Below, one piece after another: positions 2,311 through 4,737 of a stretch of 64,000 nt of DNA. The stretch's first letter is position 1, and the number at the start of each line of letters is the position of its first letter. Both the position numbers and the translations under genes were made by a program. The stretch lies in sequence record OM456492.1; one strand, 5' to 3'. The notes beneath the pieces were generated by a model. It was not told where the DNA came from. It saw only the letters and a program-made list of their open reading frames with translations, and searched no databases.

Positions 2311-2342
2311 AATAAAAAAAAGAAAACGGGGCCGAAGCCCCG
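2311..2342 (-). terminator. Intrinsic terminator
   Basis: CGGGGC-TTCG-GCCCCG hairpin followed by a long T tract on the minus strand. Confidence 0.85.
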
Positions 2343-2350
2343 AATTTCTA

Positions 2351-2722
2351 TTAATGTCCCGTCAGATCTTTCTCCAGCTCCTTTAGCGCACGTTCACCTG
2401 CCACCTGTTCGCCGGCTTTGGCGATAATCGCTTTGCGACGACGGATGTTGTCGAGCATCAGCAGTATCTGCCAGCGGGGACGGTCGAGGAACTCATCTAT
2501 CGACATCCGGTAGTTTTCACCTACTTCTTCACGTAAGTAAGTGGCGTACCAGATATCGTAAAGACTACCGTATACCGGGTTTTCAAAATCCGACAACCCT
2601 ACCTGATGGTCGCCGGTATTAAGAGCCAGTGTACGGTCATACGCTTCCAGAAGCTCGTTATGGGCTTCCTGATACGTAATAGGACGTGTGCTACGCTGCT
2701 TGAAGAGAGAGGTGGTATCCAT
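2351..2722 (-). CDS. Hypothetical protein resembling baseplate/tail assembly chaperone C-termini; possibly expressed as a -1 frameshift fusion with the upstream ORF
   Basis: 123-aa ORF with no clear SD; reading frame open upstream to ~2899; MSIDEFLDRPRWQILLML segment resembles gp51/gpT-like chaperone ends. Confidence 0.65.
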   Translation of the reverse strand: MDTTSLFKQRSTRPITYQEAHNELLEAYDRTLALNTGDHQVGLSDFENPVYGSLYDIWYATYLREEVGENYRMSIDEFLDRPRWQILLMLDNIRRRKAIIAKAGEQVAGERALKELEKDLTGH

Positions 2723-2766
2723 CTTGAGCGTTGTAATGATTTGCTCGGACGGAACGTCTTCCTGGT

Positions 2767-4737
2767 CTAGCCAATATCGGCGTATTGATCCAGCAAGAAT
2801 TTCTGAATCTCGGACACCACTCGAGAGAGCACGAAAAAAACCCTGTCCGGACTGATGGTAACAATACCACGATACAGACCGTCTTTCTCGCCGTGTGTTT
2901 TACCACACGCCGGGCAGCGTTTACCCATGTAACCGAATACCGCTAAACGTGTACGTTCGTTGTATTCAGCAATCGCGTTTTCAAACTGACCAACGTAGAT
3001 ACGGTCGGAAGACAGCTCTTCCAACATCTCAACGATTTTCGCTGTGTCGGTTTCAGTTTGTGGGATAACCTGCATTTCACCGTTTACTTCACGTTGCTCA
3101 TTAACGGTGATAGATTTCACCATGTGAGCGTAGCGCGTTAAGCGACGGGCTTCTGCAGTTAAACGCATATGGGATTCACGTTCACGCTCGGTAGCAAATT
3201 CAGACAGCGCTGCCGTTGTTGACGCGTTAACGTCTTCAATCCACTTCTCAGTGGAGTCAAAGAAGCTACCCAGGGTGGAACGGCCAAATTCAACACGCAC
3301 GTCGTGGTATTCAAATACCGAGGACGGGTCAACCTGATGCGCTGCGATATATTCGCGCTGTTCTGCAATAGAAATCACTGGACGCTCAGTACCGCGTTGA
3401 CGTGCCCACAGTTGTTTCTGCAGGTCGCTAAACAGACCGGAACCGAAACGGATACAGCGTGCGATATTCAGCTTCACATCTTCCTGCTGGTTGCAGCCGT
3501 CTTCGCCACACATCAGCGTCCATGGAATACCAGACGGCCACTTCGCCTGCAACGGACCCAGAATAACCAGCCAGTAGTCAGCCAGATCAATGGTATCCAA
3601 CAGCACCGTACGCAGATCGTTACCCGCACAATCGATGGTTGCTTCGGTAACAAACTGAAGTGCGAATTCAACCATGTGGCGCATGTACACGCCAGAAGAC
3701 GACGACAGCATCAATCCGTAGGTCTGCATACCGATGGTTGCAGTTTCCAGCGTTAGACGCATGTCGAAGTCACAAAGGTCACGTTCATGCGGTGCGCGGA
3801 AGCCCACGTAGATACCTGTGGCCGGCAACCAAACCATGTTCGGAATACCCGACTTACGTACACGACGCAAAGCAGCCAGCGCGCCAGTGTGCATATTGTC
3901 ACGCGGTGCAATAGCACCAGATGCCTTGCCGTCCGGCAACATCACGCGCTGTTCCCAAGCGGTATCACCACGGTCCAGTGCACCCGCGAATGCCGGTACG
4001 CCGTCCTGTAGACGTGGCGGGGTCATGTTCAAAGCACGATAGATGTCGTCGTAAACCTGTTGCTGTTCAGGGCTTTCGAATAGCAGCCGGCCGTCTTTCG
4101 GTGAACGTTTAATGTTACCGAGGAACTTTTGCAGGGAGTCTGCAATGATGTTAGGGTCTTGTTTCAGACCAATCAACATCTTCGACTGTGTCAGAATACG
4201 ATCGGCTTCATCTTCACCCATTTCGGCGGTTTCAGCTAAATGGGTATTACCGAAGTCAATCTCACGCATCTGTTGTTGTTCCGGAACCTTCGGTGCTGCA
4301 TCTTCCATTTCTTTTACAGCCGGCTGTGCCGGTGCAACCGCTTCCGGAGCTTTTGGCTGCGGAGCAGGTTCTACCGTAGGCGCTTTCTCTACTACCGGTT
4401 CCGGGGCACGATGTAGGTGCTCCTGCACCTGTTCAGCAAAAGTCTGAGGTGCCGGTGGTACAGGCGCAGCAGGTTCAGGCAACGCCTCTTCTACAAACGT
4501 CGGACGCTCAAGCTTAGGCTCCGGACGATGGTAGTGTTGGTGATAAACTTCTTCTGCACGGGCAAAAGAAAAATCGGGATTGGCTTGTTTAATAGCCATG
4601 ATGATTGCATCCGAGGTCGCGTCATCAGGCACGGTCGGAAGAATCATCTCTTGTTGGGTAGCAGCCGCCACAGGGGCTGGCTGGTCGGGATTAGGGCGAC
4701 GGGCATTACCCGGACGCTGATCTTGGATCTCAGACAT
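2767..4737 (-). CDS. Conserved jumbo-phage protein with Pro/Ala/Glu-rich N-terminus and CxxC motifs; possible T4 gp26-like assembly chaperone
   Basis: 656-aa ORF, GAGGA SD, low-complexity PAPV/EAP region, CGEDGC and CPACGK motifs. Confidence 0.7.
   Translation of the reverse strand: MSEIQDQRPGNARRPNPDQPAPVAAATQQEMILPTVPDDATSDAIIMAIKQANPDFSFARAEEVYHQHYHRPEPKLERPTFVEEALPEPAAPVPPAPQTFAEQVQEHLHRAPEPVVEKAPTVEPAPQPKAPEAVAPAQPAVKEMEDAAPKVPEQQQMREIDFGNTHLAETAEMGEDEADRILTQSKMLIGLKQDPNIIADSLQKFLGNIKRSPKDGRLLFESPEQQQVYDDIYRALNMTPPRLQDGVPAFAGALDRGDTAWEQRVMLPDGKASGAIAPRDNMHTGALAALRRVRKSGIPNMVWLPATGIYVGFRAPHERDLCDFDMRLTLETATIGMQTYGLMLSSSSGVYMRHMVEFALQFVTEATIDCAGNDLRTVLLDTIDLADYWLVILGPLQAKWPSGIPWTLMCGEDGCNQQEDVKLNIARCIRFGSGLFSDLQKQLWARQRGTERPVISIAEQREYIAAHQVDPSSVFEYHDVRVEFGRSTLGSFFDSTEKWIEDVNASTTAALSEFATERERESHMRLTAEARRLTRYAHMVKSITVNEQREVNGEMQVIPQTETDTAKIVEMLEELSSDRIYVGQFENAIAEYNERTRLAVFGYMGKRCPACGKTHGEKDGLYRGIVTISPDRVFFVLSRVVSEIQKFLLDQYADIG

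Follow-up and report, generated by a model that had tools for sequence, protein, structure and literature searches.

A probable programmed -1 recoding site in core gene cg18 of the Chimalliviridae

Comparative sequence analysis indicates that a 656-aa ORF and a 123-aa ORF, annotated as two genes in a nucleus-forming jumbo phage, are very likely fused by a programmed event. The window that we analysed is a 64,000-nt stretch of OM456492.1, the genome of Salmonella phage SaP7, an SPN3US-like chimallivirus. A preliminary description of this DNA had proposed a programmed -1 shift joining the two ORFs, and the comparison with relatives lends this proposal strong support: the arrangement is kept in all nucleus-forming jumbo phages examined except one. 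We interpret it as a programmed -1 recoding site in Chimalliviridae core gene cg18 at which the ribosome probably slips, a reading that we favour over slippage of the RNA polymerase. What we observe directly, and present below, is the slip site, the reading frames and the conservation of both, together with the coding signature seen in the bridge between the two ORFs.

On the minus strand of SaP7, the codons around the slip site read GAC AGG GTT TTT TTC GTG, and the heptamer T_TTT_TTC lies in frame 72 nt upstream of the stop codon of the 656-aa ORF (Table 1). Direct reading of this strand reproduced the local layout as first described, namely the in-frame heptamer, a -1 frame that has a stop near position 2900 and is then open through the slip site, and a 37-codon bridge, with the same peptide, running into the ATG of the 123-aa ORF. 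The overlap that is read in both frames comprises the final 21 codons and the TAG of the 656-aa ORF in frame 0, and the first part of the extension in the -1 frame. A slip at the heptamer would join 635 frame-0 residues to 160 -1-frame codons, giving a predicted fusion of 795 aa, the size expected earlier. Within the 656-aa protein, residues 1-190 are of low complexity and rich in Pro, Ala and Gln, and residues 190-656, which include four nearly invariant Cys, make up a conserved globular region. The nearly invariant Phe-Phe encoded by the slip site occupies residues 634-635, and structure modelling places the 21 frame-0 codons after it in a predicted C-terminal helix. Directly 3' of the end of the -1-frame ORF lies an intrinsic-terminator-like hairpin, which puts the 656-aa and 123-aa ORFs on one transcription unit.

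Table 1 Features of the cg18 locus in the SaP7 window
Feature	Position	Strand	Basis
Frame-0 ORF, 656 aa	2767..4737	-	ORF list
Slippery heptamer T_TTT_TTC, frame-0 register, encodes Phe-Phe	2833..2839	-	Direct reading
T7 run containing most of the heptamer	2834-2840	-	Direct reading
Overlap read in both frames	2767..2832	-	
5-bp hairpin: TCTCG (2826-2822), 9-nt loop, CGAGA (2812-2808)	2808..2826	-	
37-codon -1-frame bridge	2723..2833	-	
Annotated 123-aa ORF, SPN3US gp40 homologue, phrog_7580	2351..2722	-	
160-codon -1-frame extension, stop included	2351..2833	-	
Full open -1-frame stretch, 182 codons + stop	2351..2899	-	
TAA bounding the -1 frame upstream	2902-2900	-	Direct reading
Intrinsic-terminator-like hairpin CGGGGC-TTCG-GCCCCG + T tract	2313..2342	-	

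We compared 30 distinct loci, 26 from phage genomes and 4 from metagenome contigs. They represent Seoulvirus, Erskinevirus, Wellingtonvirus, Machinavirus, Derbicusvirus, Phikzvirus, PhiPA3, Agricanvirus, Goslarvirus, Moabitevirus, Eowynvirus, Tepukevirus and Chiangmaivirus, together with Vibrio, Burkholderia, Stenotrophomonas and Proteus phages. Conservation of the slippery site had been named beforehand as a test of the proposal. In 29 of the 30 loci, a run of T5-T8 falls on the same pair of almost invariant Phe codons, 27-117 nt upstream of the frame-0 stop. The downstream ORF is likewise in the -1 frame, and this frame is open across the T run, in 29/30, and the stops or frame changes in the bridge that had been envisaged for relatives are absent from 29/30 as well. 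The canonical in-frame T_TTT_TTY is present in 23 of 28 loci, compared with about 3 expected from simulations based on each gene's own codon usage, and none of the 200,000 runs reached 20 loci. The first Phe codon is TTT in every locus (28/28), even in genes that use TTT for 6-15% of their Phe residues. Five loci are without the canonical heptamer. In four of them T6 forms N_TTT_TTT, and in the Vibrio pVa-21 clade there is T5 only, plus another in-frame heptamer further downstream. Nucleotide diversity has a minimum spanning -30 to +40 nt around the T run, and within the overlap it is lowered at all three codon positions. By itself a T7 run is unremarkable, as the window contains 28 overlapping matches where 15 are expected; it is the conservation in relatives that exceeds chance. 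The comparative data indicate that the T run is under selection at the nucleotide level.

The -1-frame stretch past the T run also behaves as coding sequence. Its length is 152-188 aa in all loci except one contig that stops before its end, and the +1 frame over the same span contains 5-29 stops. The annotated small downstream ORFs range from 68 to 182 aa, with starts placed 15-88 codons past the T run or, in RAY, 25 codons upstream of it. Among 10 SPN3US-clade genomes, variation upstream of the T run peaks at frame-0 position 3 (0.32/0.30/0.52), and variation in the 44-nt "intergenic" part of the bridge peaks at -1-frame position 3 (0.22/0.61/0.33), so that past the frame-0 stop the bridge varies chiefly at -1-frame third positions. 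Two further pairs, AH06/RAY (differences 6/8/21) and pVa-21/pVp-JHP1101 (11/8/27), exhibit the same -1-frame third-position pattern, with synonymous exceeding non-synonymous changes. Protein-level conservation of the bridge, proposed in advance as a check, is present, and the substitution pattern indicates that the bridge evolves as -1-frame coding sequence.

These observations bear on whether the downstream ORF could instead be a gene of its own, translated from its own start or by re-start, with the T run representing mere Phe-Phe codons. Two genes are indeed annotated in nearly all deposited genomes examined, and the 123-aa ORF of SaP7 does have an ATG at 2722, which the preliminary description had considered as a possible independent start. 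Yet this ATG is not conserved: most other genera have TTG or CTN in its place, and the annotated starts are scattered. No ATG, GTG or TTG occurs in SaP7 between the heptamer and the ATG at 2722, nor in the -1 frame upstream of the T run in 20 of 27 loci, and in phiKZ/KTN4, AH06, RAY and one metagenome locus the 70 codons past the run contain no start codon at all. SD-like motifs are nearly absent across the loci; the absence of a clear SD before the 123-aa ORF, remarked on earlier, holds in that no SD-like 4-mer is found 4-14 nt upstream of the ATG at 2722. As for re-start, the frame-0 stop of SaP7 is 44 nt from this ATG, a distance too great for translational coupling. Given in addition a start-less bridge that evolves as -1-frame coding sequence, a -1 frame relation in 29/30 distinct loci and a T run far above codon-usage expectation, we consider an independent downstream gene very improbable.

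The least probable reading is that one gene of about 795 aa has been split, either by a sequencing error in the homopolymer or by a genuine frameshift mutation, since this two-frame layout is found repeatedly in metagenomes and in genomes that were sequenced independently and represent at least 17 genera. Three kinds of record could be cited in its favour. SEGD1 is annotated with a single 795-aa CDS, two short Logan contigs have a continuous ORF across the junction, and the deposited sequence of RTH11 has another frame relation. However, SEGD1 retains the T7 run, and its fusion arises where the sequence, identical elsewhere, is garbled and carries one additional base, while one of the Logan contigs has 7 gaps in 1.5 kb relative to the window. 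The apparent natural fusions in both Logan contigs probably reflect assembly noise and were set aside. No intact in-frame fusion occurs among the 150 best of 885 family clusters; intact full-length proteins end at most about 50 aa past the Phe-Phe, and longer tails appear only in gene calls of fragmented SPFM assemblies and in one short contig.

We propose the following mechanism for the fusion. Ribosomes translating the 656-aa ORF would reach U_UUU_UUC at the codons for Phe-Phe 634-635. A tRNA-Phe would then occupy the P site as well as the A site, and both tRNAs could shift back by one base and pair again. Without a slip, ribosomes would add 21 further residues, the predicted C-terminal helix, and stop to give the 656-aa form. 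Ribosomes that slip would read 160 -1-frame codons, which take in the presumed intergenic region as well as the 123-aa ORF, to give a product of about 795 aa; because they would read through into the 123-aa ORF, we propose that this ORF is not an independent gene. In the long form, a helical extension of about 160 aa would thus substitute for the C-terminal helix. We infer the ribosomal nature of the slip, the need for both forms and their ratio.

Frameshift stimulators were sought on both sides of the site. The small TCTCG/CGAGA hairpin of the preliminary description does exist, beginning 6 nt past the heptamer, and 8 of 9 members of the clade retain it; neither covariation nor thermodynamics supports it, with 0 compensatory pairs and a z of +0.48. 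Over the 60 nt past the T run in 28 loci, the mean z is -0.05 and no locus falls below -2. The 16 nt upstream of the run contain GGA and AGGG on direct reading, with no GGAGG-type element about 10-14 nt off. Since neither hairpin covariation nor folding z-scores revealed a conserved or stable downstream RNA structure, this evidence does not distinguish ribosomal from transcriptional slippage; nor does the phase of the T run, which the Phe-Phe codons would fix anyway.

Transcriptional slippage would require the phage RNA polymerase to stutter on the template A run and add a U to some transcripts; normal translation of these extra-U mRNAs would give the same long product. Bacterial examples include Thermus dnaX, Shigella mxiE and some IS elements, where the runs are usually 9 or longer. 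The cg18 site resembles them in its homopolymeric A/T run and in a net effect equal to a -1 frame change. It is a pure T6-T8 homopolymer in nearly all loci, its length drifts within T6-T8 though the required -1 change is constant, and no downstream stimulatory structure was found; moreover, these phages are transcribed by their own unusual multisubunit polymerases, according to the SPN3US annotation. On the other hand, runs of T5-T7 are short against the usual 9 or more, the full range of T5-T8 seen here lies below that length, and transcripts one base short would enter the stop-rich +1 frame. The ribosomal X_XXY_YYZ register, present in 23 of 28 loci, argues the same way, albeit weakly, as Phe-Phe codons impose it. 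On balance we regard transcriptional slippage as unlikely and retain ribosomal slippage as the favoured reading.

Ribosomal slippage at cg18 would also find parallels among known systems. T7 10A/10B undergoes a -1 shift near the end of a long ORF at a U-rich tRNA-Phe site, yielding a minor C-terminally extended form. The cg18 slip site is similar in both sequence and location, but the T7 gene encodes a capsid protein, its extension is shorter and it is confined to T7-like phages, whereas the cg18 site spans a whole family and its uncultured relatives. In E. coli dnaX (tau/gamma) and IS3-type orfAB, an X_XXY_YYZ heptamer and a -1 shift let one mRNA yield two products in a fixed ratio, with well-defined stimulators, an upstream SD-like element and a downstream hairpin or pseudoknot. 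The heptamer pattern and the direction of the shift are shared by cg18, whose mRNA would likewise yield two products in a fixed ratio; in contrast, no such stimulator was detected at the cg18 site, and the shifted product of dnaX is the shorter one while that of cg18 would be the longer.

The 656-aa protein is a homologue of SPN3US gp39, phiKZ gp077, PhiPA3 gp074, Goslar gp081 and RAY gp267, with tblastn matches to PHIKZ077, PhiPA3 074 and Goslar_00081. phiKZ gp077 is Chimalliviridae core gene cg18 (Table S3, PMC10299810). Its position is conserved by synteny, adjoining homologues of gp078, gp079 and gp080. Identity with phiKZ gp069 (PicA/Imp1) was considered and rejected, as the sequence records show gp077. 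The counterparts of SPN3US gp40 are the phiKZ ORF after gp077, PhiPA3 gp073, Goslar gp082 and RAY gp266, to which gene callers have assigned many different starts. The locus is surrounded by a helicase gene, homologues of phiKZ gp078/gp079, and virion RNA polymerase and DNA polymerase genes. In the library that we searched, we found no publication on SPN3US gp39/gp40, on what phiKZ gp077 does, or on a frameshift in these phages.

Searches for a function gave few matches. Neither the large protein nor the extension matched Pfam or NCBIfam, and the PHROG families that were matched are of unknown function, none of them a tail-chaperone family. A sequence search of solved structures with the large protein yielded nothing credible (best E 0.24), and a PDB fold search with its model found no match. 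A match of the extension alone to 5dmp (E 0.005) was rejected, having disappeared with a 24-sequence profile; the predicted structure of the extension was poor (pLDDT 51) and was left out of the fold search. Foldseek comparison of the high-confidence model with baseplate-hub assembly entries, including assembly chaperones, in BFVD gave E values of 2e-4 to 4e-3, and up to 8e-2, with TM scores of 0.44-0.50 on the target and about 0.3 on the query. Profile matches were obtained in a few family members, to phrog_150 in 1 of 10 (E 2e-4) and to PF12322 in 2 of 10 (E about 0.3, 11 bits versus a cut-off of 24.5), with the SaP7 protein itself unmatched in both. A tblastn search with a distant family member, with T4 gp51 and gp26 in mind, found no T4-like comparator, and a related-locus search from phiKZ and PhiPA3 returned only those two phages. 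The fold and profile matches weakly link the large protein to T4-type baseplate-hub assembly proteins, although all matches to PF12322 and phrog_150 are below curated thresholds and cg18 has no baseplate gene neighbourhood. Proteins of that type, at about 250 aa, would cover only part of the large protein, and we know of no frameshift in T4-type baseplate hub or hub-assembly proteins.

It had further been suggested that in jumbo phages this gene pair may correspond to the G/GT (P2 E/E') tail assembly chaperones. The general plan is alike: as in lambda G/GT and P2 E/E', the latter of which slips on a T-rich heptamer, the sequence predicts a -1 slip on a heptamer close to the 3' end of the upstream ORF, giving a C-terminally extended second product that shares its N-terminal part with the first, and distant relatives keep the arrangement even though their proteins have diverged. 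The link to T4-type baseplate-hub assembly proteins, tenuous as it is, could be added to this side. The genomic context, however, speaks against this identity, as the pair lies in a replication/transcription block and not between the tail tube and tape measure genes. Size does as well, the upstream product being 476-720 aa (roughly 500-700 aa) rather than about 100-150 aa. Moreover, the gene family is a different one, no Pfam, NCBIfam or PHROG tail-chaperone family was matched, and the extension here would replace a C-terminal helix instead of being added to a small chaperone. The G/GT identity is therefore exceedingly improbable. Given the weak baseplate-hub link, a tail-assembly role of another kind than G/GT is possible.

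The Chimalliviridae are a main model for phage cell biology, and cg18/gp077 is among their 72 core genes. A real frameshift would mean that nearly all deposited genomes examined mis-annotate gp40 and its counterparts; the extension is missing from the core-gene list because it was never recognised as a single conserved unit. Knock-down, tagging and interaction studies of gp077 homologues would then have to allow for two protein forms. The cg18 site would be a family-wide recoding site outside the tail-chaperone genes, built on a bare U run with no evident stimulator, and it offers a natural test for slippage by phage-encoded polymerases. Should it be the polymerase that stutters in the phage nucleus, this would amount to transcript editing in a DNA phage, conserved family-wide, and polymerase slippage would determine in what proportion the two forms are made of a core protein for whose fold no related structure has been solved.

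Direct reading of the window bears out the slip site proposed in the preliminary description: near the end of the 656-aa ORF, frame 0 on the minus strand reads GAC AGG GTT TTT TTC GTG and contains the heptamer T_TTT_TTC in register. The distance to the frame-0 stop is 72 nt, measured from the heptamer's first base to the final base of the stop. As was also proposed, the -1 frame is open from its upstream TAA onward, 37 codons bridge the heptamer and the ATG at 2722 that opens the 123-aa ORF, and no SD-like motif precedes this ATG. Among the 37 bridge codons there is no ATG, GTG or TTG.

Coordinates of the features discussed, in the window unless another source is named
Feature	Source	Position	Strand	Detail
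Overlap of the 220-aa ORF with the start of the 656-aa ORF	window	4730-4737		8 nt, ATGTCTGA
Low-complexity region, residues 1 to ~190	window	4171-4737	-	rich in Pro, Ala, Gln
Modelled region, residues 190-656	window	2770-4170	-	holds Cys 410, 415, 608, 611 (full-protein numbering)
Stop upstream in the -1 frame	window	2902-2900	-	TAA
Slippery heptamer	window	2839-2833	-	T_TTT_TTC
Frame-0 stop	window	2769-2767	-	TAG
T tract compared with other window T runs	window	2313-2326
Single annotated CDS, SEGD1	KU726251	664-3051		795 aa
Xanthomonas phage RTH11 locus	L021	1506-3708
Vibrio phage pVa-21/pVp-JHP1101 site	L013/L014	3848-3911

Here the sequence matches Salmonella phage SaP7 with 100% identity and SPN3US with 98.8%, which identifies the window as an SPN3US-like Seoulvirus, a nucleus-forming jumbo phage. 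Its SPN3US counterparts, SPN3US_0039 (656 aa) and SPN3US_0040 (123 aa), are both annotated "hypothetical". The same strand carries two RNA polymerase subunit genes, a helicase gene (phrog_16), two small ORFs followed by the 656-aa/123-aa pair, and past the pair a 285-aa ORF and then a virion RNA polymerase subunit gene; next after this block comes a DNA polymerase gene on the opposite strand. A terminator-like hairpin and its T tract lie 3' of the small ORF, so the transcription unit ends there. The window as a whole has 28 overlapping matches to T7 or longer, against 15 expected in total, and 27 of the 28 fall on the minus (coding) strand; several of these runs are possibly terminator T tracts of the kind tabulated. 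The 656-aa ORF starts within the upstream 220-aa ORF (phiKZ gp078 homologue, phrog_8045); annotations of SPN3US, STsAS, Asesino and others show the identical overlap, whose conservation suggests coupled translation.

We compared 30 phage records, representing 26 distinct locus forms, and four metagenome contigs; each sequence was translated unaltered, one frame at a time. The SPFM series (LR535901-LR535917) was excluded from all counts; about a dozen of these assemblies matched the region only as some 40 small pieces with fragmented gene calls, and look like low-quality assemblies. In the listed good SPN3US-like assemblies, tblastn gave one full-query unbroken match for each of two queries, the frame-0 protein and the -1-frame stretch, so both frames and the run are kept. 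Homologues of the large protein include PHIKZ077, PhiPA3 074, Goslar_00081 and RAY gp267. It is Chimalliviridae core gene cg18; the core list (PMC10299810, Table S3) enters it as "hypothetical protein" and does not include the next ORF. Across 102 aligned family members the C-terminal Phe-Phe and four Cys are nearly invariant.

The arrangement extends well beyond the SPN3US clade. In all loci but one, a T5-T8 run covers the Phe-Phe codons, the frame-0 stop follows within 27-117 nt, and, on a check named in the preliminary description, the downstream ORF lies in a -1 frame that is open from before the run. After the run this frame encodes 152-188 aa in every complete locus, one contig ending earlier; in that span the +1 frame is interrupted by 5-29 stops. 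The small ORFs as annotated range from 68 to 182 aa, and their starts lie 15-88 codons past the run or, in RAY, 25 codons ahead of it. The "218-nt intergenic gap" of phiKZ/KTN4 (36% G+C) amounts to 87 open codons in the -1 frame, against one stop per 5.6 codons in the -1 frame of the gene body. The sole exception is RTH11, whose large ORF as deposited terminates in the third frame, with one frameshift-type difference and a long non-homologous tail; whether this is an error or a real change we cannot tell. In the two Vibrio phages, the Phe codons carry just T5, and an in-frame A_AAT_TTG is located 33 nt ahead of the stop. The two share all 16 overlap codons but have 46 differing sites in the 60 codons after these; in this clade the slip site may have shifted position.

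A conserved Phe-Phe alone leads to T-rich codons. Yet the canonical pattern (TTT and next TTY, preceded by a codon with T at its third position) occurs in 23 of 28 loci versus about 3 expected from each gene's codon usage, a count inflated by kinship among loci, although the genera compared share only 20-50% protein identity. Conservation of the slippery site, a test named earlier, is upheld; none of 200,000 simulations reached even 20 canonical loci. Phobos, CR5 and one metagenome locus among the 23 read CTT TTT TTC. The first Phe codon is TTT in all 28 loci, and is kept even where TTT makes up merely 6-15% of Phe codons (DT01, PhiPA3, RSF1, FLC9).

The bridge itself carries a coding signature. 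In ten SPN3US-clade genomes from five genera, variation by frame-0 codon position was highest at position 3 ahead of the run (0.32/0.30/0.52) and low throughout the overlap (0.14/0.26/0.27). Conservation of the bridge at the protein level, a test named at the outset, was found: the 44-nt "intergenic" bridge varies most at the -1-frame third position (0.22/0.61/0.33), and the annotated small ORF shows the same pattern (0.10/0.48/0.18). Over the 60 codons past the frame-0 stop, AH06 and RAY differ at 6/8/21 sites at -1-frame positions 1/2/3 (18 synonymous and 9 non-synonymous codon changes), and pVa-21 and pVp-JHP1101 at 11/8/27 (20 and 12). The -1 peptides can be aligned over their full length in all clades, including the stretches ahead of the annotated starts. 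Independent initiation at 2722 was the alternative named in the preliminary description; most other genera have TTG or CTN in place of the SaP7 ATG codon. Between the upstream stop and the run, the -1 frame of 20 of 27 loci has no ATG, GTG or TTG, and four loci lack all three for 70 codons past the run. Judged from these loci, start codons cannot explain the coding pattern of the bridge.

A search of 1.84 billion cluster representatives yielded 885 family clusters, and the best 150 of these included no intact in-frame fusion: intact full-length proteins all end within about 50 residues past Phe-Phe. Longer tails are gene calls in fragmented SPFM assemblies, and the extension profile found only two matches among the family proteins compared, both fragments on short contigs. 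Because intact family proteins all end near Phe-Phe and the exceptions are fragmentary, the two-frame split is maintained, consistent with a requirement for both products or for a fixed ratio of the two. These two Logan contigs, ERR3201938 and SRR24775682, carry continuous ORFs matching both the large-protein and extension profiles; aligned to the window, the former shows 7 gaps within 1.5 kb, and the register of the latter, which may be a real hard-wired variant, differs from its relatives' more than once. In SEGD1, a single CDS is annotated across both ORFs. Its T7 run is unchanged, and continuity arises from clustered mismatches and one extra base, the rest being identical to SPN3US. Given this garbled short stretch, the SEGD1 fusion is probably a sequence artefact, and says nothing on mechanism beyond the -1 frame being open.

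The 5-bp hairpin noted earlier does begin 6 nt past the heptamer and is present in 8 of 9 clade members, but a role for it gained no support: these nine members show no compensatory pairs, and shuffled sequences fold at least as well as the 76-nt region (z = +0.48). Across 28 loci, no stable structure was found in the 60 nt past the run (mean z -0.05, none below -2). Double coding can account for the conservation around the run, where diversity is about 0.1 from -30 to +40 nt. The site therefore resembles a bare U run, on which two tRNA-Phe would slip, with -1 reading to follow. Polymerase stuttering on the run would yield the identical long protein; we nevertheless regard it as unlikely and ribosomal slippage of the two tRNA-Phe as the probable mechanism, given the short runs and the preserved heptamer register.

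Residues 190-656 gave a confident predicted model (pLDDT 92.8, pTM 0.91), in which Phe-Phe forms the opening of the last helix; a shift would therefore be predicted to swap that helix for the extension, itself poorly modelled (pLDDT 51) and all-helical. The four Cys suggest a putative metal site. The ~190-residue N-terminal region varies in length within the SPN3US clade and is missing from the phiKZ, PhiPA3 and Vibrio homologues. A Foldseek search of the PDB with the model found nothing similar (best E 0.84). Among predicted viral structures it matched its own family and, more weakly, proteins labelled baseplate hub assembly protein or chaperone (target TM 0.44-0.50, E 2e-4 to 4e-3). One of ten members matched phrog_150 "baseplate hub" (E 2e-4), two of ten touched Pfam T4_baseplate far under threshold, and some depositors had already annotated "baseplate hub assembly protein". 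We take this link to baseplate-hub assembly as a lead, not as membership. The text of the preprint on the Goslar virion structure does not name Goslar gp081, an omission that would suit an assembly factor outside the virion but is no proof of one.

The cg18 site follows the same logic as G/GT, P2 E/E' and T7 10A/10B. The suggested kinship with G/GT goes no further than this logic, the gene being none of the three. A joined CDS is marked in none of the 30 annotated records, and the literature searched, whose scope stopped short of subscription journals (e.g. the phiKZ, EL and 201phi2-1 genome papers), nowhere describes these phages as using a frameshift. The finding should be of real interest to researchers working on them.
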